A DNA stretch of 64,000 nt from Dicyema japonicum. Lineage: Eukaryota > Animalia > Dicyemida. The notes under the pieces are model-generated. The model saw only the letters and a list, made by a program, of their open reading frames with translations. It ran no database searches and had not been told where the DNA came from. Location of the stretch: the NCBI GenBank assembly GCA_011109175.1, contig RDEW01000019.1, positions 158,172 through 222,171 of the forward strand. The letters are read 5' to 3'. This document shows positions 19,991 through 57,557 of this stretch, piece after piece. The stretch's first letter is position 1. Every line of letters starts with the position of its first letter. Both the position numbers and the translations under genes were made by a program.

Positions 19991-20181
19991 ATCATTCAAA
20001 CCACTAACATTGAACGATAGCTCGATGATTAAGAGTTCTTGAAAATGAGCTACGTCATTTTCTAACAACCTCATATGTGAGTAAGACTTCGTGCAATTTA
20101 GTTACGTCAAAAACTCAACCAAAAAACACCAAAAACTATGACCTAAGCACCAGGATATAAATTAAAAAAATCCGTCATATT

Positions 20182-22110
20182 ATGTTTTCCGCCAAGTTAA
20201 TTGCCTTTGATAAATGTGGAGGAGGAATTCGTCCTATTGCTGTTGGGTTTGTTTTTCGTCGACTGGCTTCTAAACTTGCTAGCAGAGCAATCCTTCCGAT
20301 GCTTGTCAAACAACTGCGACCAACCCAAGTAGGGGTCGGTACTCCTGGTGGATGTGAGGCGGCGGTTCATGCCGTTCGGATGTTTACTGGAAACAGAACG
20401 AACATGCCTTGTGTGGTCCTCAAGATTGACATAAAAAACGCCTTCAATACCATACGGCGCGATGTAATTTTGGAAGATTGTCTTACCCATTACCCGTCTA
20501 TATATAATTATGTTCATTGTTCGTATGGAAAACCGTCCAGTCTTGTACATGGGAAATACTTCATTCCCTCGTCGTGTGGAGTTCAGCAAGGAGACCCACT
20601 AGGACCGGCATTGTTCTGCCTCGGTGTCGACCGTGTCATGAGATGCCTTACTACTCCGCTGAACGTGTGGTATTTGGATGATTGCACCCTGGGAGGTCAT
20701 CCTAACAATGTATATGACTGTCTACAGAGATTACTAACCCAATTGGATACGCTTGGTTTAAAGCTAAACGCATCCAAATGCGAAATTGTTAATTATGGAT
20801 TCTCCCGATATGAATGGAATCGAATCCTATTAATGTTTCGGGGATTATTCCTAAAATATCGGAAATCGAGCCGGATTATTTGGAAATACTTGGATGCTTT
20901 CTGGCTGAAACTGGAATTAACGACACTCTGTTGGCTAAAGAACAGCAACTAAGAAAAACTTTTTTACGCCTTGGGATGCTGGATGCACATACCTCTCTTT
21001 TTCTCATAAAAAACGCTTTATTCACGCAGAAATTAAATTACGTCCTTCGAGGAGCTCCATGTTACCTGAAAATGCAACAACTCGGGGCGATTGACTCCCT
21101 ATTCCGGTCTACGACCGAACGTATTACTAATGTCGAATTCGACGAACAAGGATGGGAACAAGCAACCTTGCCCGTTCGCTTTGGTGGACTCGGAATTCTC
21201 TCACCATCTGATTTACACCCGGCATATCAATCCTCATTGGACTCCAATCAGAATTTGATCATGATGATTCTCCAGCTCCCATCAGAGTCGTCAAAGATCG
21301 AAGATTTGGTACACCCTAAAGTCAAACAACTCGGGCAGAGAGACCTTTATGAGTCTGTTTGCGAGGATAAATACGAGAGGCTTTTGAAAATATCTAACCA
21401 ACACCGACGAGCCTGTCTTTTAACTGCAAGATGCGAGTGGAGCGGGGCTTGGATCAATGCCCTACCCATTGGAAACGTGGGAACTCACCTAGACGATGAA
21501 ACGGTCCGCACCGGAGTCTCCATCAGACTTGGATTGAAAGTTTGTCAACCCCATGAGTGCCGATGCGGCCGGAAGGTCGACTGCTATGGACATCATGCCC
21601 TTTCTTGTCGAAAAAGCGCAGGTCGATTCGCTAGACACAAGGCTATAAATGAAGTGGTGAAGCGCGCCCTCGAGTTGGCGGGATACCCATCCATTCTAGA
21701 GCCAACGGGCTTGAGTAGGGATGATGGGAAGCGACCCGATGGAATTACTGTCTTCCCCTTCTCTCGGGGCAAATGCTTAATTTGGGATGCTGCCTGTACT
21801 GACAGCTTTTCCCAGTCGAAACTTTTGAGGTCGGCAATGAAAGCGGGAGAGGCGCCCGTTTATATGAAAACTCAAAAATAAAGAAATACAGCAGCCTCCT
21901 AAACCGTTTCCATGTACAGCCAGTGGTCGTCGAGACGAGCGGAGTCTTTGGCCCCAAGACGGTCTCTTTCCTTAGAGCACTTGGGTGTCTATTGACCAAA
22001 GCCTCGAGGGAGCGTCGGGAAACCGAGTGGCTTTTCCAAAGGATATCCCTGGCAGTAGTCAGAGGTAACAGCCACTCGATCATATCCGCTGGACTTTAGA
22101 ACGATTTTAT
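20182..22110 (+). mobile_element. CRE-clade non-LTR retrotransposon, 5'-truncated, RT + CCHC + RLE, one frameshift
   Basis: IRPIAVG, KIDIKNAFN, GVQQGDPLGP, YLDD. A frameshift near the G-run at about 20840 leads into CRCG...HALSC...RHKAIN...KRPDG...LIWD; an A-rich tail follows. Confidence 0.9.
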
Positions 22111-22329
22111 TGTTATAAATAAATTTAAAGTAATTAAAAAAAAAAAAAAAAATTAAAAAATATTTTTTAAATAAAAAAATAAAATTTTTAATTTACTATT
22201 ATCTGTAAATAATCTATTGTTTTATTAAATTATAATAATTATTCTCCCTTTTTGAAAAAATCGCTACACTACTAAATGAAATGTTTTCAACTAACTCAAC
22301 CTTGCCCTGGGTACGGGATTACTAATACC

Positions 22330-23645
22330 TATACAAAAACCCAATAAACCCGAAAGGACCGGTTGAAAACTTACGACCTATTATATTATCAAATTCTCTA
22401 CGGAAAGTCTTAGCTAACATTGTATTGGAACGAATAAAAGGACCTGCCTATGAATACCTACCCGAAAGTCAAAGTGGGTTCAGAGAAGGAAGATCAACAG
22501 CTGATGCAGTCTGGAGTCACAGATGGAGATGTGCAACACATCAAAGATATTGCAATGCCATCCACATTCTGGGAATAGATCTATCGAAAGCCTTTGACTC
22601 GGTTAACAGAAAAAAATTGATGACAGTGCTGGAAGGGTTTATTGACGAATCGAGTCTAAGAATAATCCTTCTATCTAACACAGAGCTCCTTGTGAGAGTT
22701 GGAAAAACCTACTCAAGAAAATTTGAAACAAACACAGGCACTCCTCAAGAGACTCCCTCTCTCCCCTACTATTCACAATATACTTGGAGGCCTCTATGAG
22801 GGAACTGAGACCATTATATCAAGGAAAAATAGAAGAAGTGATTTATGCTGATGATGTTGACCTAATTTCTGAAGACAAAGAACTCCTGGAGCATGTACTA
22901 GAAAAAGTACCAGATATACTTGAGAAATGGTTTCTCACCATGAACAGGGAAAAAACAGAACGGACAGAGATAAGAAGAATGAACAACTCACTCGAAGAAA
23001 AATGGAGACACATAAAGAAACTTGGCTCACTACTAGGAGATAGCGAAGACATCATACGGAGAAAAACATTGGCAAATGCGGCATTACAAAGGCTTAAAAT
23101 CTTGGCTAAAACGGAAAGGGTACAACATAAAACAAAGGATTATGTTATACGACACTTTCATCAAACCAATTCTACTATACAACTCTGGGACCTGGGCCAC
23201 CTCTAAAGAGGAATTGGAAAGGCTAGACTCATTTCACAGGAATCATCTAAGAAACATAACTGGAATGTCCTGGCCATCCAAGATCTCGCGGAATGGACTG
23301 TACAATAAATGTGACTGTATACCATTAAGTCACGAGATCATTAGCTCTCTTTGGAGACTTTTTGGACACGTCCTGAGGTTGGACCCGATATCCCCTCCGA
23401 ACATCGCAATGGAAGATTACTACTCCTCCAATGTAAAACGCTTCCTTGAAGGACGGAGAACTACCCTCCCGGTCTTTTACAAAACGATCTGAAAGCCGTG
23501 AAGAAAACATTGGCATCTCGTGACGATCTGGACTCACTGAGGGACCTAGCAAAGAACAGAAGAGCTTGGAGCAACCTAACTAATTCTCTTATATTTTTTG
23601 CTGCACATGCGGGGCTATAAATATTATGGCTCTCGTGAAAGTGAT
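22330..23645 (+). mobile_element. RTE-clade LINE, RT to 3' end, frameshifted
   Basis: ESQSGFREGRSTAD, GIDLSKAFDSV, YADD, LLYNSGTW, RLFGHVLRL in successive frames. Confidence 0.9.
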
Positions 23646-28292: not shown

Positions 28293-28653
28293 CTAACTTG
28301 CAAACGAGATGGCAGATGCTTGGTTGCAAGGTCCTCGTTATTCAAATAGTAATGACGTGGGAGGAATTGCAACACAGTACCACAAGAGTTATCTGAAGCA
28401 ATTGGTGGTAGATAGGAAGCTCCAGGTCTATCTACAGTCCACTGTATTAAAGCGGACCCTAGAGAGCCTGACACTGGAGTATAGGAGGCAGAGCCCGGAG
28501 ATGCCATATGGGCAGAGGGTTCAATTGGACAAGGCGCTCTCGGAGTTGTTTCAGCAACCAGAATCGAACCTGCATGAGGAGACTGGCGAAAGCAGGCGAG
28601 GAAGGTTGTTGATTATTAAATATTAGTTTTTTATTGTTTGTTAAATAAAGTGG
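28293..28653 (+). mobile_element. R4/Dong-like LINE 3' stub
   Basis: RKLQVYLQSTVLKRTLESLTLEYRRQSPEMP; ends TTAAATAAAGTGG like the copies at 35675 and 50087. Confidence 0.8.
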
Positions 28654-34930: not shown

Positions 34931-35674
34931 CATTTTGAATTAAAATAATTTTGACACTCATTTTTTTAATATGAGACTAGACTTCAGATCACGGGAAGGT
35001 GGCCCTGAAAATTCAGGCAGTCCTGTACGTTCATGCGCGGGCACGAAGGAAGAACACCGGGCAAAGATGAAGTCTCTGTCAGAATGCATCGGGATCACGT
35101 GATAATTAGTTTGTTTTACCGTGGTCTTGGGTTAAATAAATAAATTAATTTAAAAAATGTTTTTTGTTTGAGTGCGAAAAGAGTATAATATAAAAAAGCA
35201 TTACGAGTCTTGCCACAAAGATGACGGTTGAGTAGAAGAAATGTACTGAAAATATTTTTTGCTTTGAGACAAGAAATTAATTTGTTTTTGGTAATAAGAG
35301 ACAATCATGTTCCTGAGCTCTCTGAACAAATTTTTATGACAAATCTTGAATTCCAATGGAGATAGTAGAACTTCAAAATGACACCCCGTTAGAAAGAAAA
35401 ACGTAAAGTTGGAATTCCATAATTACATATTTTAACTACATGCTTTATCTTTACGATTTATGCAATGTTTGGCAATACTTACGTATGCGAACAATTTTTT
35501 TCAACTATGAAATTAAATAAGTCCTCTTTTAGATCATGATAATGAGTGAGCATGTGCAGTCTTTATTAAGGCTGGCTACTTTAAAAAAACATAGTCTGAC
35601 CAGAATCATTGCTTTACAAGAGAAGTTGTCAAAAATCGTTGAATATTAAGTAATAAACTGTTTTACGTTTAAAG

Positions 35675-35985
35675 CCACTCTATTTAACCAACAATAAAAA
35701 GTTAATATTTAATAATCAACAACCTTCCTTGCCTGCCTGTTTGCCAGCCTTCTCAGGTAGGTTCGATTCTAGTTGTTGAAACAACTCCGAGTGCGCCTTG
35801 TCCAATTGAACCCTCTGCACATATGGCATCTCCGGGCTCTGCCTCCTATACTCCAGTGTCAGGCTCTCTAGGGTCCGCTTTAATACAGTGGACTGTAGAT
35901 AGGCTTGGAGCTTCCTATATACCCCAACTGCTTTAGATATCCCTTGTGGTACTTTGTTGCAATTCCTTCCCACGTCATACAAACC
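35675..35985 (-). mobile_element. R4/Dong-like LINE 3' stub
   Basis: RKLQAYLQSTVLKRTLESLTLEYRRQSPEMPYVQRVQLDKA. Confidence 0.8.
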
Positions 35986-41160: not shown

Positions 41161-42866
41161 CAGTCCGACCCCGAATTGGGGCACCAAGTGCCCCAAAAAG
41201 CGGGTGCCTCAAAAACAGGGGTTTAATAAAACAGAAATTTTAAACATCAAAAATCAAATTTAGAAAAATAATCAGTTAATTTATCCCCAGTTATCCTTTT
41301 ACTTCTTACATTTTTCATAAAATTAAGTCGAAAATCGTAAAATTCTTTGAGCATTTCAGGAGATATGTAAAAAATTTTCTTCTCTAACTGATCAAGAGAA
41401 TCTTGCGTTTCTTTTAGAATTGTTTCCATGTTATTGTTTTCTAAACCTTCGTTGTAAATATTATCAACGAATTCGTCACTTTCCCCATTCAATGTTTCGT
41501 TTACGGCATTGTTGATCATTTCTTCTGTAATGGTATCTTCAATTTTTACGGAATCACGAATCTTTTCAATTTGATTCCAACAATTAAATATTAAACTTGG
41601 ATCAAGTTTTTCCCAGCTTTTAGAAATTAGCAGAATTACATGACGAAGGTTTATTTTGTTTATCAACCGTTTGAATTCATCATCATCCTCCTCAAAACAC
41701 AAATACTGAATCAGATAATTTGAGTAATAATCTTTAAAGGTCTTGATAATTCCCATATCCAATGGTTGCAAATACGGTGTTGTATTTTTTGGCAAAAATA
41801 AAAACTCAATATTTGAGCATTCAATAGTTTTATGACATCCCGCATTATCAAGCAATATTAATACTTTTCTGTTGATTGTATAAAATCTTTCATTTATCCG
41901 AGTCAACCAGCTCATAAAAATATTTCCAGTCATCCATGCATTTTTAGAGGATGAATATGAAATTCCAAAATCTTTCACATTGAAATTTTTGAGACATCGA
42001 GGGTTTTTAAATTTTCCAACAATCAATGGCTCAAGTTTTTCCCCCATGGAATTGCAACAAAGAAGTACAGTGACTCTTTCTTTTCCCTGTTTAAAGCCAA
42101 AAGTATCGTCATTTATTCCGACAAAAGACTTTCGTGGAGTCCTTTTTATATAAAGAGCAGTTTCATCACAATTAAAAACATTTTGTCTTCCATATTGAAT
42201 AATTTTATCAAGAATTTTAAAAAACTCATTGATGTAAGTCAAGTCACATGAATTTTTTTCTCCACAAATTGATTTAAATTTCAGTTCATGTCGCTTTTTA
42301 AATCTGTCAAGCCAGCCGTTTGAAGCTTTGAAAGTATCAAATCCAATTTTTGAAGCCGTATATAAGGCAATTTTCTTTATGAAAGGACCTGATATTGGAA
42401 CCTTATCTTCTCATAGTTTCTGAAATATTTCAAAAACATGATCATCGAATTTAGAATTCTCACAATAAGGCATAGGATCCTCATCCGTGTTTAAAGTCCC
42501 TTGTTCAAGAAAAGGTACAATTGTTTTTTTATTCGCGAAATCATGCTTTTAGTAGTTTCGTATTTTTTAATTATTTGTCTTTCAGATAATTTGTTCTTCA
42601 ATATTAATTTAGCAATCGTTAATTTTGTTTCGTAGTTGATACCATTCACAACAAAAAATGTAAATAAACGTGTAAATTAAAATTATATATTTATTAATAA
42701 AATATAATTTTATTTACTTATAATTTCATTCCTCACAATTTTATAGTGCCCCAAAATTTCCATTTTTTTATCGATTTTCCATTTTACTCTGCCAAAATGT
42801 TGGCCAAAAAAAATGCCCCAAAATGCGGGGTGCCCACCCCTGTCTGCCCCAATTCGGGTCGGACTG
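41161..42866 (-). mobile_element. pogo/Tigger-like DNA transposon with DDE_1 transposase (5' part disrupted)
   Basis: TIRs CAGTCCGACCCCGAATTGGGGCA / TGCCCCAATTCGGGTCGGACTG, TA on both flanks. Motifs FKASNGWLDRFKKRH, NCDETALY, LLDNAGCH, LQPLDMGII. A stop and a frameshift lie in the HTH region. Confidence 0.92.
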
Positions 42867-42883: not shown

Positions 42884-44150
42884 CAGGGTTGTTAGATTTA
42901 AATCATTTGATTTTAATCAATAATCTAAATCATTTAAAAGATAATTTTTTTTAATGTCTGGTACAAAGCGTGATGCCTTATGGGTTCAACTCGATAAATG
43001 TATTATTCCTGGAAAGACCGAGATTCGAGCCAGAAACCGCAATTGCGGAACGAGGTACTAGGTCTCGGATGAGGCAGCATCATTTGTTCAGTCAAACTAA
43101 TATTGATATCTTTGAAAATCTGTCGAAACCTGAAAGTGACATGATGAACGAATTACTCCCAAGGACGAGGGACCATTCTTTAATCGACTTCGTTACTACG
43201 ACGACGTCATCAAAGAAAAATTTGATTGATATGCAACTAGCTAGATACATATATTCCAGTAACACTCCTTTTGCTGCTGTAGAACATCCGGAATTTGTCC
43301 AAATGCTTCTTCCTGGGTATCGTTTACTCTCTCGTCATCAAATTGGTGGTTCATTGCTCGGTCGTGTGTACGACCAAATACATTAAGACTGTCGGCAAAG
43401 ACACCAAGGACAAGATAGCGTCTATGATGTTGGACGGGTGGAGTAACATTCATAATGAACCTGTTATTTGTGTGTCAGTTGTAACATCGGATGGAGAAAG
43501 CTGTCTAATTGACAATGTGGACACCTCTGGATATAGCTACACCGCGGAGTATCTTCAATCTGTTGCTTTAGCCTCTGCAATTTGAAAAGAACTTGAACAG
43601 ACTTATATTGACTATGAATTTACGACTATTCTAGAAAAAGTGAAAACTCGAGCAGATCAAGCATTAACACTTTCCACTTACTTGCGAATCTAATGGACCC
43701 AACACGTTGTGGGAGATCTCTTTCAACTGCTGAGATTTACCTCGCCTTGGAGTATTGTGCTGAACATCACAAATATGCTCTTCCGACTCTGATTAATTTC
43801 AGAGCAAAAGCTGATCCATTCAAACTATACATGTTCGCTCCGAATTTATTGAACAAAGTATCATCTATAGCTTGGTGGGAGTCGTACTCTTACCAGTTAC
43901 CTCTAAAGTAATTTCACTCTGCAAAAAATCTTTTGGAGCAGTTGCTTCCACAGGTGGAATAGAACGAATTTTTTAAAAAGCTGCCAAACTTAACTTTGTT
44001 TACGAGCATTTAAATAAATAAATACGATTTCCATTGTTTTTATTTTTATTTTACTTTGATTCCGAATAAAAATCATTTAATTCAAAAAAATCCTGTTTAA
44101 ATCAAAAAAATCCTATTTAATTCATAAAAATCAGATTTTTAACAACCCTG
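42884..44150 (+). mobile_element. Internally deleted hAT transposon
   Basis: 11-bp TIR CAGGGTTGTTA / TAACAACCCTG. 8-bp TSD TTTTAAAC / TTTTAAGC (7 of 8). Transposase remnants FAAVEHPEF, LLSRHQIGGSLL, MLDGWSNIHNEPVI. Confidence 0.88.
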
Positions 44151-44569: not shown

Positions 44570-46680
44570 AGTTTGGTTTACCATTGGTCTTTGGAATAAT
44601 TTAATTTAACTCAATAGTAGAGTCGGACAAAGAAATTACTGCGTCGGCGGGAAACTCTGGTCTTCTACACAAAAGAGAATCATTTGCTACTCTCCTTTAG
44701 AGGAGTCGATAGAAACAATGGAATAGGTTTTCTTCGTTTCTGCAATAAACCAGAAAACTCATTTAGGAAGGCCTAACCATAGGGAAAAATTCCGATTAGT
44801 CCCGAAGAAGGACACTTGCATCGAGTTCCTCTACAGAAAAAGAATCTCCCGAAAGTGGTGGAATTGCTGGGAGAATCATGGAAAAAACTGGAATCAATTA
44901 ATTAATTAGCTTTAGCACCGTTTTTTTCCGTGATCTTTGGGTGTATAGATAAAATAATCAGTGACAGGTCGTAATGTTCCATCCCCCAGTAGATAGTGGC
45001 CATTGCTGCTGAGGAGCTTATTCCCAGATGCTCTGAAAGCCACCCGCTGTTCGTGAGGGTCTTATCTATGGATCTAGTGATAAGTTCGGTTAGTGGACTT
45101 GAAATGTCTAAATTTTTATTACAGATCCCTTTGATCCTTTTAATAACAGGCACTGAATGCCAATTTTGACAGAAATTTGAGTGTTCTGCGGGAGAAGGCG
45201 TATTATTTAAGGTCGTATGGGTGAAGAAAGCTCTTTAGAACTTCCATAAGTTTTCCCGGAGTATCGAATCGAATGCAAGAGACATATCAATGCCAAGTAT
45301 TTCAATAGATTTTTATACTATTGGCATAAAGCACAATACCATCTGTGCCCCCAGTGTGGCCTAGGTTATCGTGGACAGTGATCGAAGCCGAACTCCTCCC
45401 TCTGTTAATGAAGCGAATTCTTTGAACATCCTTGGTACGTCTTTATATTTCGTATTTTGGGAAATTTGATTATCTGCTTCACTTCTGGCAAAGGATTTTT
45501 GTGTTTGTTTGATTTTTATTAAAACTCTGCCTTTCTGCGCGGAGCTCGTTGATTTTTCCCGTCACTTGCTTGGAGCACTTTTTATTTTCAGCAAGGCTCT
45601 TTTTGTATTACAGAAAGTCGTCTTATATCCGGACTGCTTTGTTGTGACTGGGTTTGGGGGTGGGACCCAAAACACTAGAAGCTGTTTTTTTTGTATAGCA
45701 ACAACTATTTCTCCCATACATTATTTGCTGGTTGATTTTTGTTAATGGAGTTTATGTTTTTCCTTAGAGTTATACTATATCGAAGACTGGTAGATTATTC
45801 ATAACGTTGCCTCTCCTTGTCGTATCGTACTGAGGCGTTTTCCACGTATTTCATGAATTCTGTTTAATATTAGCAGAGCAACAACAAGTTTGTGATCGCT
45901 GCTAGTATCAAGTCCGCCATATGACCTCGAATTTTTCATGATAGCCTTCAGATGTTGTTTGCAGAGAATATAGTCAATCTGGTTGTATACTCGGATTGTG
46001 TTGTCTGATTTGTATTTTTTGGTGCCAACCCAAGTGGTCTTGTGTCTTGTTGAGTGCTTGAAACAAGTAGGTTGAACGCCAGAAAAATTGTATCAATGAC
46101 TCTCCAAGAAGGTTGCGATGATTCTTTCCGTGTGTTTCAATACAAGTTTCCCCTGGTATGGCTTTTCCAGCTCTGGCGTTCCAATCCCGGTGACAAGGAG
46201 AATGTAAGATGACGAAAGCGAGTTGTATACACTAGTGAGAGTAGAGTAAAATGTTTCCAGGTAATTCGATATTTGTTGAGACTCGCGCTCTTTTTGGGGC
46301 ATATATATTTATAATGGAAATGACTGAGTTGATTTTATTTCCGCATTTGATTTGCAGCAGTGCGACGCGGTCAGAATGTGCCCACACTCTTGTAACACAG
46401 TGAATCAGGTCCTGATGGACTGCAAATCCAATACCATATTGACAACAGGCCGATGTGAGGGTAAATAGGTTGAGTTGCAATACATTTCTGCACATTGTAA
46501 GGTTGTTTGTCTCTTGTAGAGAGCAAAGAGAGATGTTGTATTTTGCTAGATCACATGTCAGTTGGTGTTTCTTGAGGTTGTTTAATTCCACAGCATTCGA
46601 AAGTTCCCAGAGTGAACGGGGAAGTTTTTAACGAATACGAATAAGACATAATGCAATAGAGATGTCGTCACCACCTCGTC
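44570..46680 (-). mobile_element. RTE-clade LINE (APE + RT), degraded
   Basis: CSLQET, GIGFAV, IINIYAP (ORF 46232-46591), NQIDY and SDHKLV; then GIDMSLAFDSI at about 45280. Confidence 0.75.
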
Positions 46681-47347
46681 TCTACCTCAACAAAAAAATT
46701 TTATATTTTAACAAAAAATTAAACCAACTATTCATTTTTAAAAACTTTTTATACTAATTAGGTCAACAATTTAATTTTTTAGGTCAATTTAAATAATTTC
46801 TATCATTTTCATCATACAAAACCATAATTTTGGATAGAATTGAACAGTCTGAATGAAGCGTTCAACAAACATTCGACTCTGCGGATTGTTAGGGCATCAA
46901 TGTTAAAATTTTTGTAATTTCAAAAATTCGGTCAAATAATTATTTTTAGGGCAATAAGAAAAGATTTTCATTTTTGATTATTGAAAACTGAGATAATCAT
47001 TGACATCAAAAATATGTGCACAAATTCTAATCGGGAAGAATTCAGATTTCAATAAGATATTTCCAGAAAGTATATTACTCATAAAATTGTCATCCATTCA
47101 TTTTAAAATTGGGAAAAGTAAATTTTTTTGAAACCTAATCGCTGATTAGGACTACAATCTGATAGCAGTCTTGGAAACAAAAATCTTTATTTCCATTAAA
47201 ATTATAGTGAACGGTAATTATTGTTGGAGACTCTGTAGAAAAAAATTAACAAGAAAAGATAAAAATAACCCAAATATGATTATCTAATTAAATAAATATA
47301 CTGGGTTAAATTAGTGACTATATAATCGAATATATCGTTATAATTTA

Positions 47348-49188
47348 ATGATATCGGTTTATTGTACATTATTTTTAATAATAAAATCTAGTGATATTCG
47401 TATACTCAGGATTTGTACTCGGGAAATATATATGGGAATGTGAATAATTATTATTTAGGACTTTTACTTAGATCCTTATGCAAACAGATATCAATGGAAA
47501 AGTATATTTTTAAATTCTCATAGAAGATATAAGTGCGGAAGATCGTCAATCTAGAAAAACAGGTTAGATTAATGATTAATCCAAGAACCTCCAATGACAA
47601 CATCTCCAAAAGGTTTGATTCCTTTTTATTTCAAGAAACAATGAACTTAATAACTACCACTGGTTTGTTAATAAAACTTTATTCTAGAATCTCCAATGAC
47701 ATCATCTTCAGGAGGTTTGATTCCTTTGTATTTCAAGAAACAATGAACTTAATAACTACCACTGGTTTGTTAGTAAAACTTTATTCTAGACTCTCCAATG
47801 ACATCATCTTCAGGAGGTTTGATTCCTTTTTATTTCAAGAAACAATGAACTTAATAACTACCACTGGTTTGCTTCAGTAAAACTTTATTCTAGACTCTCC
47901 AATGACATCATCTTCAGGAGGTTGATTCCTTTGTATTTCAAGAAACAATGAACTTAATAACTACCACTGGTTTTTTACTAAAACTTTATTCTAGAATCTC
48001 CAATGACATCATCTTCAGGAGGTTTGATTCATTTTTATTTCAAGAAACAATGAACTTAATAACTACCACTGGTTTTTTATAAAACTTTATTCTAGACTCT
48101 CCAATGACATCATCTTCAGGAGGTTTGATTCATTTTTATTTCAAGAAACAATGAACTTAATAACTACCACTGGTTTTTACTAAAACTTTATTCTAGAATC
48201 TCCAATGACATCATCTTCAGGAGGTTTTGATTTCCTTTATATTTCAAAGAAACAATGAACTTAATAACTACCACTGGTTTTTTACTAAAACTTTATTCTA
48301 GAATCTCCAATGACATCATCTTCAGGAGGTTTGATTCATTTTTATTTCAAGAAACAATGAACTTAATAACTACCACTGGTTTTTTAATAAAACTTTATTC
48401 TAGAATCTCCAATGACATCATCTTCAGGAGGTTTGATTCATTTTGTATTTCAAGAAACAATGAACTTAATAACTACCACTGGTTTGTTAGTAAAACTTTA
48501 TTCTAGATCTCCAATGACATCATCTTCAGGAGGTTTGATTCCTTTGTATTTCAAGAAACAATGAACTTAATAACTACCACTGGTTTGTTAGTAAAACTTT
48601 ATTCTAGACTCTCCAATGACATCATCTTCAGGAGGTTTGATTCTTTTTATTTCAAGAAACAATGAACTTAATAACTACCACTGGTTTGTTACTAAAACTT
48701 TATTCTAGAATCTCCAATGACATCATCTTCAGGAGGTTTGATTCATTTGTATTTCAAGAAACAATGAACTTAATAACTACCACTGGTTTTTTACTAAAAC
48801 TTTATTCTAGAATCTCCAATGACATCATCTTCAGGAGGTTTGATTATTTTTATTTCAAGAAACAATGAACTTAATAACTACCACTGGTTTTTTACTAAAA
48901 CTTTATTCTAGACTCATCAATGACATCATCTTCAGGAGGTTTGATTCATTTTTATTTCAAGAAACAATGAACTTAATAACTACCACTGGTTTGTTACTAA
49001 AACTTTATTCTAGACTCTCCAATGACATCATCTTCAGGAGGTTTGATTCCTTTTTATTTCAAGAAACAATGAACTTAATAACTACCACTGGTTTTTTAAT
49101 AAAACTTTATTCTAGAATCACCAATGACATCATCTCCAGGAAGTTTTATTACTTATTTCAAGTAACACTGAAGTCACACGCAATTTAG
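47348..49188 (+). CDS. Predicted 36-exon micro-exon gene encoding a secreted mucin-like Ser/Thr-rich protein (about 334 aa)
   Basis: Exons 47348-47390, 47410-47439, 47472-47501, 47524-47562, then 31 repeat exons of 27 nt (one is 26 nt), and terminal exon 47163-style final segment 49163-49188. All introns are GT-AG and phase 1. Product MISVYCTLFLIIKSRFVLGKYIWEYPYANRYQWKKDISAEDRQSRKTEPPMTTSPK-(ETMNLITTT-[E/D]SPMTSSSG)n-ITLKSHAI*. The 5' exons are less certain than the array; no RNA evidence. Confidence 0.78.
47586..49162 (+). repeat. Tandem array, about 15.5 units of 102 bp
   Basis: Unit = 27-nt A block + 23-nt GT..AG + 27-nt B block + 25-nt GT..AG; 16 A blocks and 15 B blocks counted. Confidence 0.97.
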
Positions 49189-49897
49189 GCTTAATTAATT
49201 TAATTAATTATTGGGTTTTGGGTCTTTAATTGGGTTTTTTCTGAAAATCATTTATTAATCCACTTGCTTGCAAAAAGATTTTCAATAATACCTATATATG
49301 AATTTTAAATTATGTCGTTTGCTAGGTTTTTGCTAGCATTTTCTCTGCACTCCAACCTTTAGGTAATATAGACGCGATTGAAACTGGACGAAATGACTAA
49401 TTATCTGATGGTACTTGTCTGGGATGTCACGTGTAATATCATTTTGCCTAACAACTTAATAAAATGAATCCTTGAAGGACAGACCTGAATATATCAGTAT
49501 CTCGGAAGTATAGAATGCTGAAAACTTCCTTTTGATAAACGGAGATCTCTATCTTGAAAATTCGTATTTAATCCAAGCTCGTTATCGTTTCAACCAACAT
49601 TGACGTGATAATTTCTGAAGAGATCCATGACGCTAACCATTATGGACAATATGCTTCATGAGAATTATGTAGAAAATGATTTCGCTTTATTAAAAGCAGG
49701 TACCTTTTTCATCTAAGTGGGAACATTTTTTTCAGTTGCTTTTCTCACAACAGACATAATCACAACAAACACGTAATTTTTTAAATCTAAATATAGTTTT
49801 TAAATCGAACACCGTCAATTTCAATAGATTCTGGTGGCGGACAATTGATAGGACAATTGATAGAATCCTCAATTTTCCCAGGAATCACACTCATCAC

Positions 49898-50085
49898 TAG
49901 GGCGATTTTTGTCAATAAAGTCAAAAATTCATATGTTATTTAAAATTGTTTAAAACTTATTTTTAAAAAAAGAAGTAGTTTTTAATCAAAAATATTGTAT
50001 AAATCAAAAGTGATAAAGTCAAAAAATCAAAATTTTGTGTAATGTTAAAAAAGTCGAAATTTAATTTTTTAGGTAAATCTTATAA
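49898..50085 (+). mobile_element. Terminal fragment of the same hAT family as 12348-14198
   Basis: TAGGGCGATTTTTGTCAATAAAGTCAAAAATT matches the reverse complement of 14150-14198; interrupted by the R4-like stub. Confidence 0.65.
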
Positions 50086-50086
50086 A

Positions 50087-50450
50087 CCACTTTATTTAAC
50101 CAACAATAAAAAAATAATATTTAATAACCAACATCCTTCCTCGCCTGCCTGTTCGCCAACCTCCTCAGGAAGGTTCAATTCTGGTTGCTGAAACAACTCC
50201 GAGAGCGCCTTGTCCAATTGAACCCTCTGCACAGATGGCATCTCCGGGCTCTGCCTCGTATACTCCAGTGTCAGGCTCTCTAGGGTCCGCTTTAATACAG
50301 TGGACTGTAGATAGGCCTGGAGCTTCCTATCTACCCCCAACTGCTTCGGATAACCATTGTGGTACTTTGTTGTAATTCCTTTCCACGTCATTACTATTGG
50401 AATAACGATGACCTTGCAACCAAGCATCTGCCCCATCTTGGTGCAAGCAA
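50087..50450 (-). mobile_element. R4/Dong-like LINE 3' stub
   Basis: GQMLGCKVIVIPIVMTWKGITTKYH...LQSTVLKRTLESL. Confidence 0.8.
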
Positions 50451-50499
50451 GTCATACTTCCTTTTTTTCTCAAACCTCCACAGTTTGCAAACGGTCTTA

Positions 50500-52080
50500 A
50501 GATGTAATGCCACCCTCCATGATAAGGACGCGAGTGCATACACCTCCGGAGAAGACCTTTCCCAGTTGGATCCAGATTCGCTCCTCAAACTTATCAATAA
50601 ACGTCGTTCATCGAAGAGTATCCCGGTGAAGATCCCAAAAGCAACACGCCCTCTGCTGCCGAAGCCAAAGCAATCGACGATGCTCTCCGCTCCGACTCTA
50701 TAAACGACTTAATTTTGCTCCTTTCGCACTTGGCTCCCCCGAGATTGCAATGGGAACGAGTCTATTTCAATCTAAATGAAAAACAACATCCGCGCTTTTA
50801 TGGATGGAACTCACTTTACGGACCTCCCGTCCTTTTGCATCCGTTCAACTGAGAATTAAAGTTCAACTTGGGAAACTGAGATTTTTCGTTTTAGAAGGAC
50901 CGTACGATCGAAGTTGCCTCAAAAAGGAACCCGATCCCCATTGAAGGCCCTCTCACTCTCGGGCGGACCACGCAATCCAACCGTTGATACTTACAAAATT
51001 CTATTGGAGAAGCATCCACCCTCTCCGAATGACCTACGCAACTGTTCACCCTTATCAAAAGTGACCCCTTTGACCACGTCGCTTGAGGATGTCATCACGG
51101 CGTTATAGAACTTTGCACCAAGTAGCAGTGGAGGTCTCGATGGCTTAAGGCCCGGCCATCTTAAAGACCTTATTTCACCGACTATTGGAGACCAAACATG
51201 TCGTCTCTCCTTCTCACTCACTTCTCTTAGGAACAGGATAATATCTGGATACTTGCCTGATTTGATACGTCTATCTTGTTTTCGGCTAGTCTGATTGCAG
51301 TCGACAAAAAGGGAGGTGATATCTGCCCGATCGTGGTCGGATTCACCTTCAGGAAACTAGCATCCAAGATTGCTTCCAGATTTTCTACGTCAATCTTGTC
51401 AAAATCCTTACTTCCCAGTCAATTCGTCTTGGGTGTGAGGCAGTCGTTCACTCCGTCAGGACATTCTAGGAACCGCAGCATTCAAAACTTTAAAAGGCAC
51501 ATTATGGTAAAGCTGGACATCAAGAACGCTTTTAACAGTTTAAGAAGAGACTGCATGCTGGAGGCCTGCAAAGAAAGATGTCCATACATATTTGAACTGG
51601 TCAATTATTCATACTAAAAGGTTGCGTCACTATTACATGGGGATTTCATGGTTCAATCGTCCTCAGGTGTTCAACAGGGCGATCCCCTCGTACCACTGCT
51701 GTTTTCCCTCGGAATTGAGAAAATTACGAAGAACTCTCGAGGCCTACTCAACATCTGGTACCTCGATGACGCTGTCCTAGGAGGTCCCCCGGAAACGGTC
51801 TTCCAAAAGTTAGAAGTACTCATCCCCGCATTGTCCGAGGTGGGTCTTGAATTGAATACAACGAAATGTGAAATAACAAACTGTGGTCTTGCTGACGATG
51901 ACTTCTCTTCAATTGTTCAAAATTATACTCCTTGTTTTTTGGGATTTCAACCCCTGAAAACGAATTGATTTTTCTTGGATCCCCGATCACTAAGAATGCG
52001 ATGAAGCATGAATTTTCTTGGATCCCCGATCACTAAGAATGCGATGAAGCAGTAAAAAAATATCACAAGATTGTGGAGTT
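50500..52080 (+). mobile_element. CRE-clade LINE, pre-RT and RT region, frameshifted
   Basis: LLEKHPP, GGLDGLRPGHLK, VKLDIKNAFNSL, GVQQGDPL, WYLDD. Confidence 0.8.
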
Positions 52081-52235: not shown

Positions 52236-53080
52236 TCAAAGGATCTTGGGTGTGACAATTGAAAAGTTTATCGGGAATATGGAAGAGTGGTACTCACCCA
52301 GTCTTGATGAACGTGTACAAACAGTACATCGAGCCATGTTTCTCATATCTATGCGACTCGTGAATTTACTGTCATCGGAGTCAATAAAATTTTCACTATG
52401 GTTCACCCAGCCATGACTTGCAAAATGCTTATTTGAAGTAGCACAAGCAGCCCATTGATCACTATAAATATTCGTTTCACTACCCACATTCTTTTTTTGG
52501 ATAGGTAGTAAAATTTCCCTCTTTCTATTTAATACATAAAAGAGTCTTGTCCTTCTGGTTCCACGTTGGATCATACCGAAGACCCAAGGGCTGTCAATAC
52601 TCTCTTCAAAGTTATTTCTTCGAGATTTTTTACCCGGGTCCTCATACCGAAGACCCAAGGGCTGTCGAGATTTTTTATCCGGGTCGCCATTAATGAGATC
52701 ACCTATCAGCATCCTTCTCTGGTGATTTTTCCTTCTCCCTCTCATTAGGATCTCATCAATTTCTACAGCTGTTTCATGTCCTTTAGTCTTATCCCTTGAG
52801 TTTAAAAAATCAGATTTCGTTTCGTGTACGAAGTTTGACCAGTTTATAACTTTGTGGTTACTATTGATCCCCGTCTGAAGTATTTTGTATTTCCTTGTAT
52901 ATTTTTTCCGTATTTTTAAATTTCCTTCAAATTTCAAAAATTTTTCTAATGAGAGATCCGGTAATAAGCCCTATCCTTCTAGCATGTCCAGTGTATTACA
53001 ACAAGAACCAAAGTTGACATAAAACTCTTCAGGTAACTAAAAAATTATTTTTTATGGGGGTTCTATAATTGCTTAGGGAG
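52236..53080 (-). mobile_element. Merlin (IS1595/ISXO2-like) transposase, degraded
   Basis: VEIDE...RGRRK...WVFGMIQRG...IYSDQW...VNHSENFID; TIRs not located. Confidence 0.75.
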
Positions 53081-54827: not shown

Positions 54828-56424
54828 CAGTCAAACCCCTTTAAACCGATTCCTCTCGGGACCGACAGAATTGTCCGGTATAGAGGGGAGGCCGGTATAT
54901 TGAACAAGTCATTAAATTTACTTATAACGAAAAAGTGAAACAGTAAAGTTAATAAGAAATCTGTCAAAAAGGATTGCCTCGTATTTAGCTTAGATTCAGC
55001 AATCGCTTTATTGTTCAGATAGATCAGTCTGTTGACGGGATCGAGTAATACAGGGTCTTGAGTGCAAACAAAGCGGCAGATTTAGTCTAGTATTTGTTGA
55101 ACATTTGTGCGTGTTAATTTCTCCATATGTTTTGGGTTTGTTTGCTTATCAGAATTTGAGTCTCTGTCATTATCTTTAGAAGCTGTGACTGTTTGGTATT
55201 ACTCAACTAGGGATGATTCCCAATCTTTGGAATTTTCAGCGGGTATTTCCAAGTCCAAGTTGACAAATTTGTCTTCTGTAATTGGATTATCGACTAGTCT
55301 ATTCAGGTAACTCATTCAGATTAATATTCTTTAAACATCGGGGTTTTCGAGACTTGCCAATTACAATTGGTTTAGCTTTTTTCCTGTCGAACTGCATGCA
55401 GTCATTACAGTAAGACGTTCCTTTGACTTCTTTGATCCACTGTGATGATTACCTCTTAGTGATAGTGTTTTATCAGGAAGGGCACGATAGAATAGTCCGG
55501 TTTCGTCGCAGTTAAATATATCCTCTGGTGGATATCCCTCACTTAGAAAAGGTACACGTTCCACCCAGTCAGAAACAACATCACTGTCAACATTTGCTAT
55601 TTCACCTCTGATACAGTACGACTGGATTGAGTAACGAGACTTCCACCTGCATAACAAGCCAGTGGAAGCTTTACAATCATTTTCGCCCAGTGCTTTAGCA
55701 AACTGTAGCTTTTGCGATAATAATTGGTCCTGACAAACAAAAGTTTTTGGAACGTGCTATCTGGAACCACTCCCAAGTGATTTTATTCAAATTTGTAGTT
55801 GTTGTCAAAACGTTTTTAGCAAAATTTGCGTTGTTATTGAATAATTCAAAATAAATATCAGCCTTTTTAAGCATGTCTGATACAGTGCTGCATCCAACTT
55901 TATACTTCTTGCTGAGAAATTTTTGTGTCGGCTTATGTGTTTGGTTCGATTCATTTATTATTTGAATTTTCTTCTTTAAAGACAATTCGCAACGTAATTG
56001 TTTTCTTTACGGAGCTATCATCTTTTAGTTTTTGATTTTCTGTCGAGTTGTTCGCAATATATATTTCTATCGTTGTTCGCAATTCAAGGTTAAAGACAAT
56101 TAATAGGATTAGATCAAAGATTGATGTAAGAAGCCCGGTTTATGATAAAAGAAAATTAAAACTGGGACCACAAAATACGGCCGGTATTCGGAATAGAAGA
56201 GATCCGGTATATCAAAGATGAAATAGCAGTGATGGNCCTGTTTATGATAAAAGAAAATTCAAACTGGGACCAGAAAATACGGCCGGTGTTCGGAATAGAG
56301 GAGATCCGGTATATCAAAGATGAAATAGCAGTGATGGCATATGAGGTGAATCTGGACCAGAAGTTTAGTCTGGTTTTAAAGGAATTCAGGTATACCGAGG
56401 AGTCGGTTTAGAGAGGTTTGACTG
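54828..56424 (-). mobile_element. pogo/Tigger-like DNA transposon, disrupted transposase
   Basis: TIRs CAGTCAAACCCCTTTAAACCGATTCCT / AGGAGTCGGTTTAGAGAGGTTTGACTG; TA on the left flank only. MSLKKKIQII HTH region, IFNCDETGLFY, SKERLTV. Confidence 0.85.
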
Positions 56425-56825
56425 AATTCATATTTTTTTCCATTAACAATTAATTTATTAACGAATTAATTAACAGGTACTCCTCAAGGGAAGTACCCTT
56501 TGTTATTCCACGTGTACTTGGTGACGGCACTACGTACCTTCTATGAAAATGACATAGCTGAAACCAATAATGGTGACGACGTCGATTTCATGTCAACGGA
56601 TAAATCAGGTCTTCTTTGCACATCGGAAGTGGATCCTAGTGAACTTAGACAACAGTGGAAAGTAAAACTGCTTACTGTTATTATTTCGAAACCACAAAAA
56701 TATAAAAGTACCACATTATATTTAAAAATTATCTAGTGAACTTAGACAACAGTGGAAAGTAAAACTGCTTACTGTTATTAATTCGAAGCCACAAAAATAT
56801 AAAAGTACCACATTATATTTAAAAA

Positions 56826-57557
56826 TTATCTTAATAAATCATTATCTTCACTTTCAGGAAATCCTGAATTAAATGCTGAAGGATGAATCTGAAATCCGTA
56901 CAGTCTACATTCACAACAAAACTCACGTTGGTTTGAAGATCTTCTCCACTTTGTGTGGCTTTTTCTCTGGGTAAGTTAGGTAGATCATGTGCGGAAGTCC
57001 AGTCCCAAAATAGGCTCCATCGATTTTACGGTGCTTTTCTGATTTTGGGGTGTAAATGTCCTCACATTTTGGACAGTACAACTTCACGAAGGCAGTCCTC
57101 GGAACATCAGAGATACCTAGCAACTACAAAAAAACATCTGACCCACTGGAAGGAGGTTCTGTTGGTCACAATAATATCGTGGACACATACCAAAGACTCC
57201 GCTCAAACATTTATCGATCTTTTTTTAGGCAAAGAATTTCAACCATTTTTCCCATCCCACGTGCAGTGAGGACATAGCGGGCATGCATCAAACCATATAG
57301 TTCCTCTGCGTAACCTTCGATGGTAGCATCATCTGTTATTTCATTGCAGGAAAAGTCATCATCATAGTTGAGAATGAGTCTGAGTGCGTGAGTATAGCTA
57401 GGTATTTGACTGGATAATCCTGTACTGTTAAATCGATCACTGAGATATTCTGGGTCGATCTAGGGGTGTAAGAGTTATTGTTTACTTCACAAAAGTATTC
57501 GTTTCCTGTTTGTGTGCAAAAAGATTTAATCCAAGATACCTGGTCAGAACTGGTCAT
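56826..57557 (-). CDS. CSNK2B: Casein kinase II regulatory subunit beta, 5 exons
   Basis: Introns 57460-57485 (26 nt), 57219-57243 (25), 57117-57142 (26), 56905-56926 (22). Product MTSSDQVSWIKSFC..NEYFCE|IDPEYLSDRFN..LYGLMHARYVLT..M|IDK..FGMCPRYYC..LLPVG|ISD..KLYCPKC..DGAYFGTGLPHM..KPT|LYGFQIHP. Confidence 0.97.

Follow-up and report, generated by a model that had tools for sequence, protein, structure and literature searches.

A tandem array of 102-bp units in the genome of the dicyemid Dicyema japonicum, a parasite of octopuses, is probably the repeat domain of a real protein-coding gene, a mucin-like gene built of micro-exons and micro-introns. The array lies in a 64,000-nucleotide stretch of contig RDEW01000019.1 (positions 158,172 to 222,171, forward strand; assembly GCA_011109175.1), which is called the window here and whose own numbering is used throughout. 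Each unit would consist of two 27-nt exons, A and B, both phase 1 at either end, split by GT-AG introns of 23 and 25 nt. The splicing out of 35 such introns (19-32 nt) would produce a 36-exon mRNA, which would encode a low-complexity protein rich in Ser, Thr and Met. This protein would start with a hydrophobic N-terminus, probably a signal peptide, and continue with about 15 copies of [E/D]SPMTSSSG-ETMNLITTT. It may be secreted or exposed on the surface as a mucin-like and probably O-glycosylated product. Since every exon is symmetric, any number of units and any skipped exon would keep the frame. The array may expand and contract by unequal crossing-over in the 102-bp register, and the introns would take up indels. 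I infer transcription, splicing, secretion, glycosylation and this mode of diversification from the DNA sequence. The reading is carried by the anatomy of the array, by its improbability under shuffling, by the distribution of its variants and by the reality of introns of this size in the genome.

Anatomy of the array

Tandem Repeats Finder reported one array of about 1.6 kb, with a period of 102, 15.6 copies, 94% matches, 1% indels and a score of 2739. When the units are cut at the B blocks, the order is a GT..TAG spacer of about 25 nt, an A block, a GT..AAG spacer of about 23 nt, and a B block. The segmentation gave 31 repeat blocks, namely a diverged first A block (A0), 15 A blocks and 15 B blocks. 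It was found that 30 of them are 27 nt in length and one is 26 nt; the base lost from this short A block belongs to the AA of CTAGAATC. The B block is AAACAATGAACTTAATAACTACCACTG, and its 15 copies show zero mismatches. Outside the array, no B block was found in the 64-kb window at up to three mismatches (0 expected in shuffles). The spacers range from 20 to 27 nt, and 9 of the 31 depart from the modal 23 or 25 nt. The composition of exons and spacers alternates sharply: the exons have 24% T and 40% A, and the spacers 52% T.

An original prediction, made from the letters of the window, had described the 27-nt blocks with their identical B copies, nine deviant spacers of 20-27 nt, and a spliced product that is 50% Ser and Thr. 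The counts agree on each point, the last because Ser and Thr occupy 9 of the 18 residues of a spliced unit.

Gene model and predicted protein

The removal of 35 GT..AG segments of 19-32 nt leaves 36 exons and 334 codons, and all the introns are in phase 1. The exon lengths are 43, 30, 30 and 39 nt, followed by the 31 repeat blocks and a terminal exon of 26 nt (Table 1). In this in silico model, symmetric micro-exons form most of the coding sequence between a 5′ candidate signal-peptide exon and a 3′ exon. Without the spacers, one reading extends from the ATG at 47348 to a TAG just beyond the array, save for the 26-nt A block. The frame is kept at 34 of the 35 junctions, and the 334-codon reading requires an X (unknown residue) at this single break.

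The commonest spliced units are ESPMTSSSGETMNLITTT (7 copies) and DSPMTSSSGETMNLITTT (5 copies), accompanied by two variants. The spliced peptides are ESPMTSSSG-ETMNLITTT (7 copies), DSPMTSSSG-ETMNLITTT (5 copies) and variants of these. The first array unit is diverged and reads EPPMTTSPK-ETMNLITTT, and the spliced reading ends in ...SPMTSSPG-ITLKSHAI. Among the 334 residues there are 80 T and 66 S (146 together), 32 M and 19 P. The predicted product is Ser/Thr-rich and mucin-like, but it is Pro-poor and unusually Met-rich.

The predicted exon-exon junctions join ...CATCTTCAGGAG to AAACAATGAACTT... (A to B) and ...ACTACCACTG to A[A/C]TCTCCAATGAC... (B to A). The corresponding exon-intron boundaries would be ...TTCAGGAG followed by GTTTGATT..., and ...CCACTG followed by GTTT[G/T]TTA.... 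As had been predicted, a chain of upstream exons (43, 30, 30 and 39 nt) can be assembled in a consistent frame and in phase 1. Among 1078 open stretches of the window that begin with an ATG, the N-terminus ranks in the top 2.7% for hydrophobicity. The signal-peptide exon and the 5′ chain are plausible, but the sequence does not make them unique.

Table 1. Coordinates of the array, its putative exons and other features of the window.
Feature	Position	Strand	Description
Putative exon 1, candidate signal peptide	47348-47390	+	ATG and hydrophobic N-terminus MISVYCTLFLIIKS, phase 1
Three putative unique micro-exons	47410-47439, 47472-47501, 47524-47562	+	30, 30 and 39 nt; GT-AG introns of 32 and 22 nt between them
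ATG of the alternative unspliced reading (34-aa repeat)	47572-47574	+	27 stops up to 49188 as assembled
102-bp unit (array)	47584-49172	+	27-nt A block, ~23-nt GT..AG spacer, 27-nt B block, ~25-nt GT..AG spacer
A0, diverged first A block	47586-47612	+	22/27 identical to consensus; EPPMTTSPK
Sole 26-nt A block	48507-48532	+	spliced frame shifted, stop after codon 212
Last A block	49116-49142	+	ESPMTSSPG; followed by 20-nt GT..AG spacer 49143-49162
Putative terminal exon, degenerate B copy	49163-49188	+	ITLKSHAI; TAG at 49186-49188
CK2-beta (casein kinase II beta) gene, complete	56824-57557	-	four GT-AG introns of 26, 25, 26 and 22 nt
RVT_1, LINE (long interspersed nuclear element) reverse transcriptase	~20.2-20.9 kb (20161-23489)	+	domain match
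pogo DDE_1	41.2-42.4 kb (41250-42410)	-	domain match
DUF659/hAT-like piece	43283-43582	+	domain match
RVT_1, LINE reverse transcriptase	51.3-52.0 kb (50084-51965)	+	domain match
IS1595/Merlin-like transposase	52239-52970	-	domain match
CENP-B_N/pogo (Tc5) DNA-binding piece	~55.7 kb (55364-56006)	-	domain match

Shuffled units and distribution of variants

How often does such an arrangement arise by chance? I shuffled the unit 20,000 times with its dinucleotides preserved. The strict rules demanded an open frame, no exon below 18 nt, and a pair of introns of 20-27 nt. Such a unit appeared in 0.9% of the shuffles, and in 0.46% with both exons being multiples of 3. Under loose rules (one to three introns of 19-32 nt), some spliced open reading frame (ORF) was obtained in 20% of dinucleotide shuffles, and one with at least two introns in 4%.

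The variants were counted in the 14 complete units. The 48 spacer columns show 21 variant states, and the 54 exon columns show 4 (binomial P=1.6e-4). Most substitutions had been predicted to fall in the spacers, and 11 substitution states were indeed counted there versus 3 in the exons (binomial P=0.017). The indel columns are distributed likewise, with 10 in spacers and 1 in exons (P=0.003). It was revealed that the variable spacer positions make up the 5′ middle of the spacer, and that no change occurs at the GT end or in the final stretch of 15 nt (AAAACTTTATTCTAG) or 9 nt (TATTTCAAG). A minimal intron, with its branch site and 3′ site, would show such a pattern. In the spliced frame, the changes in A0 (S>P, S>T, S>P, and G>K) keep the S/T/P character, while in the unspliced frame they are radical (I>T, I>N, and F>S). 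As judged from these statistics, the predicted spliced reading beats chance by far, and it also beats the unspliced and the non-coding readings.

Ultra-short introns in the genome

The CK2-beta gene in the same window has introns in the size range of the array spacers. Its donors are GTA, GTT, GTC and GTG, and its intron phases are 0, 0, 1 and 2. The coding pieces match the Pfam family CK_II_beta at positions 1-17, 18-88, 90-113 and 116-176, and together they encode a conserved protein without interruption. Because these Pfam positions are contiguous, introns of the array-spacer size are real in this genome. The original prediction had likened the spacers to the introns of LRR1, CK2-beta and KPTN in both length and GTT donor; in CK2-beta, the one of the three compared here, the lengths are indeed similar, but GTT is the donor of only one of the four introns. 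The T content is 23-50% in the proven CK2-beta introns and 16-37% in cryptic GT..AG segments inside its exons, and the array spacers resemble the most T-rich of the proven introns. Two attempts at an intron catalogue were discarded. The lengths from an ORF-joining intron census of the window did not peak above those from shuffles, and one of the known CK2-beta introns was called wrongly by a minimum-intron path finder.

Ultra-short introns with minimal GT/AG signals have been described in D. japonicum (PMC13644364; PMC6736024). The only animals reported to have such introns are myxobolid myxozoans and D. japonicum, and the signals are approximately GTa...AG (PMC13644364). The D. japonicum assembly has 36.7% G+C, 49% repeats and many LINEs (PMC6736024). 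RNA-seq data (BioProject PRJNA496385) and a transcriptome shotgun assembly (TSA GHAB00000000) are listed for the species (PMC6736024). In its annotation, repeats were masked before transcript mapping (PMC6736024). Thus, genes made of tandem exons and introns would be hidden in this annotation.

Excess of units and a second 3′ end in DNA reads

Four runs of 2019 from one sample (X1-X4) were placed on positions 47000-47830. These runs are DNA: they contain Nextera junction adapters, the intergenic flank is evenly covered, and there are no joints. In X1, the summed contig depth over the repeat units, which is not a copy number, is about 63,000-86,000 versus 541 in the single-copy flank, or about 116-160x. 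The same measure is about 30-110x the flank in X2-X4. Compared with the 15.6 units of the assembly, the number in the genome must be far higher, and the reads point to tens or upwards of 100. The assembly has collapsed the array, or else there are further arrays or paralogues. In all four libraries, the excess repeat depth is located at 47588-47830. Upstream, the unique part at the 5′ side (47165-47640) has the depth of a single copy.

In one contig, whose depth is that of a single copy (539 versus 541 in X1), a repeat unit is followed by a variant 3′ end, ATTTCAAGTAACACTGGAGTCACACGCAAG, where the window has ...CTGAAGTCACACGCAATTTAG. Hence there is a second locus or allele, whose C-terminus and stop are different and which possibly lacks the same stop codon. 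The contigs with the variant 3′ end join the window at 47726 as a loose end in X1-X4, with TAACACTGGAGTCACACGCAAG versus TAACACTGAAGTCACACGCAATTTAG in the window. Upstream of the array, at 47093-47243, several alternative short contigs differ by single-nucleotide polymorphisms and 1-nt indels. They are consistent with the pooled, heterozygous sample, whose heterozygosity is 1.24% (PMC6736024).

Genomic surroundings

The window has a G+C content of 37.4% and is dense in transposon remnants (Table 1). The segment 50084-50432 has 92% copies at 28311-28653 and 35672-35978. The flanks of the array are unique, and homology to the other repeated elements of the window starts only at 49891, about 700 nt past the array. 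No terminal inverted repeat or long terminal repeat linking the array flanks was found. I rejected a transposon-borne repeat and LINE 5′ monomers as the origin of the array on three grounds: the lack of such terminal repeats, the distant start of the element homology, and the lack of any other B block in the window. A structured RNA was also considered, and no Rfam family matched in 46500-50000.

Just downstream of the CK2-beta stop codon there are two two-copy tandem duplications, 56138-56338 and 56636-56831, with periods of 102 and 97 and 95-97% identity. Their sequence is unrelated to the array.

Alternative explanations

Several points weigh against a spliced gene. The locus is situated amid transposon remnants, and its units show a satellite-like excess in DNA depth. 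The read data on the locus all come from DNA runs. The consensus unit is open in one frame even without splicing. The conserved CK2-beta exons (56927-57557, minus strand) contain 17 GT..AG segments of 19-32 nt which are evidently unspliced. Thus, GT, AG and length are insufficient to define an intron here, and the splice code of this genome, as far as these segments indicate, must draw on more than these three features. The 163 possible paths from an ATG to the array leave little weight to the 5′ exon chain, which is just one of them; this part of the original prediction is one solution among many. The 26-nt exon truncates the frame at codon 212. This break need not kill the gene, because the 212-residue product would retain the N-terminus and 8.5 repeat units.

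The contrast between conserved exons and variable spacers, as originally put, is weaker than stated, although the variants do concentrate in the spacers. The 3′ stretches of 15 and 9 nt in the spacers are as invariant as the exons. As the array is either young or homogenised, its invariance says little about selection, and homogenisation rather than selection may be behind much of the conservation. The array sequence comes from a hybrid assembly of Illumina and PacBio RS II data (Illumina paired ends, four Nextera mate-pair libraries, and PacBio RS II reads; PMC6736024). About half of the indels are length changes of T/A homopolymers, nearly all in spacers. A caveat about homopolymer sequencing errors had come with the original prediction, and it applies to this half. 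At least four of the indels either are complex or do not lie in a homopolymer (GCTTCAG for GTTAG, loss of the variable base in TTA-TAAAAC, GATTC-T, and GATTA-T), and so it is unlikely that all the indels are errors.

The main rival is that the array is plain non-coding DNA, a minisatellite or satellite between genes in a stretch rich in transposons. The open frame and the spacing of GT and AG would then be coincidental, and the uneven variation would result from mutation or sequencing bias in T-rich homopolymers together with concerted evolution. The neighbouring remnants of pogo, hAT, LINE and IS1595-like elements suit this explanation, and so do the depth of about 30-160x the flank with many more units than 15.6, the invariant stretches within spacers, and the purely DNA origin of the reads. 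Moreover, 20% of the shuffles permit some spliced ORF and 26-27% are open unspliced. Against these stand the strict two-intron symmetric solution, found in just 0.46-0.9% of shuffles, and the uneven placement of variants (P=1.6e-4). A hydrophobic ATG start upstream, a stop right after the array, and the absence of the array from the other repeated elements of the window also speak for a gene. I consider a non-coding satellite unlikely. It is still less likely, in my estimation, that the micro-exon architecture is real and the locus itself is a dead or decaying paralogue, with one or more functional copies elsewhere. Decay would account for the premature stop from the 26-nt exon. The excess units in the reads and the single-copy-depth contig with a different 3′ end (..TAACACTGGAGTCACACGCAAG), which belongs to a second locus or allele, could provide the other copies. 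However, the 212-aa product would still have the signal peptide and mucin repeats and would have lost no C-terminal domain, the missing base (AA>A) could be an assembly error, and the other 34 exons are intact.

An unspliced ORF seems very improbable. It would run from the ATG at 47572 to the TAG ending at 49188 with a 34-aa repeat (RISNDIIFRRFDSFLFQETMNLITTTGLLLKLYS), and its frame-breaking indels would be assembly errors. This span is 1617 nt, a multiple of 3, and the five common polymorphisms are all at first or third codon positions (L/F, L/V/I, I/L, S/S, and L/V). Hybrid PacBio RS II assemblies are indel-prone in repeats. However, 7 of the 14 unit lengths are not multiples of 3, the ORF as assembled has 27 stops, and several of the indels concerned are complex or non-homopolymer. 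The A0 changes are radical in this frame, and an open unspliced frame is itself common in shuffles (26-27%). An AlphaFold2 model of the unspliced repeat had low confidence (predicted local distance difference test score 59.9, predicted template modelling score 0.28), which is not decisive. A protein database search with the unspliced 115-aa ORF gave no match at E<=1, a result that is uninformative because CK2-beta exon 2, used as a control, gave none either; sequences of this organism in that size range are absent from the database.

A micro-exon/micro-intron gene remains the explanation that I favour for the array. A wider proposal is tentative, and I regard it as possible but a little short of probable: dicyemids may have a class of genes which resemble 50-100-bp satellites, consist of cassettes of a symmetric exon of about 27 nt and an intron of about 24 nt, encode secreted or surface mucin repeats, and are masked from the set of 5,012 genes. 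In such a class, the introns would buffer slippage indels, and unequal crossing-over and exon skipping would vary the length of the protein. The array locus would belong to this class, with a unit number of tens to more than 100 as judged from the reads.

Comparison with known systems

The original prediction had compared the locus to the schistosome micro-exon genes (MEGs), as a variable secreted glycoprotein. The exon/intron reading behind this comparison is the best supported, and splicing, secretion and variation are properties that the locus would have by inference only. Judging from the architecture, however, the closest known analogue is not the MEGs but SmPoMuc, the polymorphic mucins of Schistosoma mansoni. 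In SmPoMuc, the 27-bp exon 2 encodes a 9-residue repeat and is part of a tandem genomic unit of about 1 kb, of which there are up to about 20 (PMC2576457). Concerted evolution keeps the units alike (>93% identity), and the repeats resisted genome assembly (PMC2576457). The array, known in silico alone, likewise has a 9-aa Ser/Thr-rich repeat per 27-nt exon in a tandem genomic unit. Both have a mucin-type repeat domain, and the host organism is a parasite in both cases. In contrast, the SmPoMuc unit of about 1 kb has long introns and GA microsatellites, while that of the array is 102 bp in length with introns of 23 and 25 nt. SmPoMuc has one exon type per unit, and the array has two alternating types. 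SmPoMuc continues with 13 further exons (3-15) and a conserved C-terminal domain, while the array is followed by 8 residues only. The array locus is better described as an analogue of SmPoMuc than as a member, on account of its tenfold smaller unit, its two exon types and the missing C-terminal domain.

Schistosome MEGs share with the model a signal-peptide exon and many symmetric micro-exons with lengths in multiples of 3 (bioRxiv 10.1101/2023.06.21.545858; PMC4350168). Their products are small and secreted, as is predicted for the array, and exon skipping would preserve the frame. On the other hand, MEG micro-exons are 3-81 bp in length and unique in sequence, while the exons of the array are homogenised in tandem. 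MEG introns are long, up to 5 kb (bioRxiv 10.1101/2023.06.21.545858), and those of the array would be 19-32 nt. The status of a MEG also rests on secretion and on observed splice variants (bioRxiv 10.1101/2023.06.21.545858; PMC4350168). Family-level sequence similarity is a further mark of MEGs, and the unspliced 115-aa ORF of the array matched no protein at E<=1.

The genomes with ultra-short introns, those of D. japonicum and the myxobolid myxozoans, resemble the array in their introns of 20-27 nt, reduced GT..AG signals, and A residues before the AG. The papers on these genomes deal with genome-wide intron length and not with tandem exon-intron cassettes or satellite-like genes (PMC13644364; PMC6736024). 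Mucins with a variable number of tandem repeats and proteins with Pro/Thr/Ser-rich (PTS) domains also contain tandem peptide repeats that are rich in Ser/Thr and change in number through unequal recombination. However, their repeats are within a single large exon, while the array would have an intron every 9 residues. The array is also low in Pro (19/334) and unusually high in Met (32/334).

In the literature, I found no description of tandem cassettes of an exon and a micro-intron or of tandem-exon mucin genes in dicyemids, nor of such cassettes in myxozoans. The architecture had been put forward as undescribed. In view of the SmPoMuc precedent, with its 27-bp exon in tandem genomic repeats, this claim is better limited to miniaturisation, with the locus as a small-scale variant of the tandem exon-intron mucins of the SmPoMuc type.

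If the model is true, the locus contains the most compact animal exon-intron module known to me, with about 50 nt per 9 residues and dozens of repeats. The spliceosome would be able to process long runs of 27-nt exons between introns of 23-25 nt. In dicyemids, whose genome is highly reduced, a class of genes acting at the host interface would be hidden by repeat masking, and the count of 5,012 genes would be an underestimate. The array would parallel, by convergence, the way in which flatworm parasites diversify their SmPoMuc and MEG products. Relative to SmPoMuc, the new element of the proposed architecture is the shrinkage of the exon-intron module to about 50 nt.

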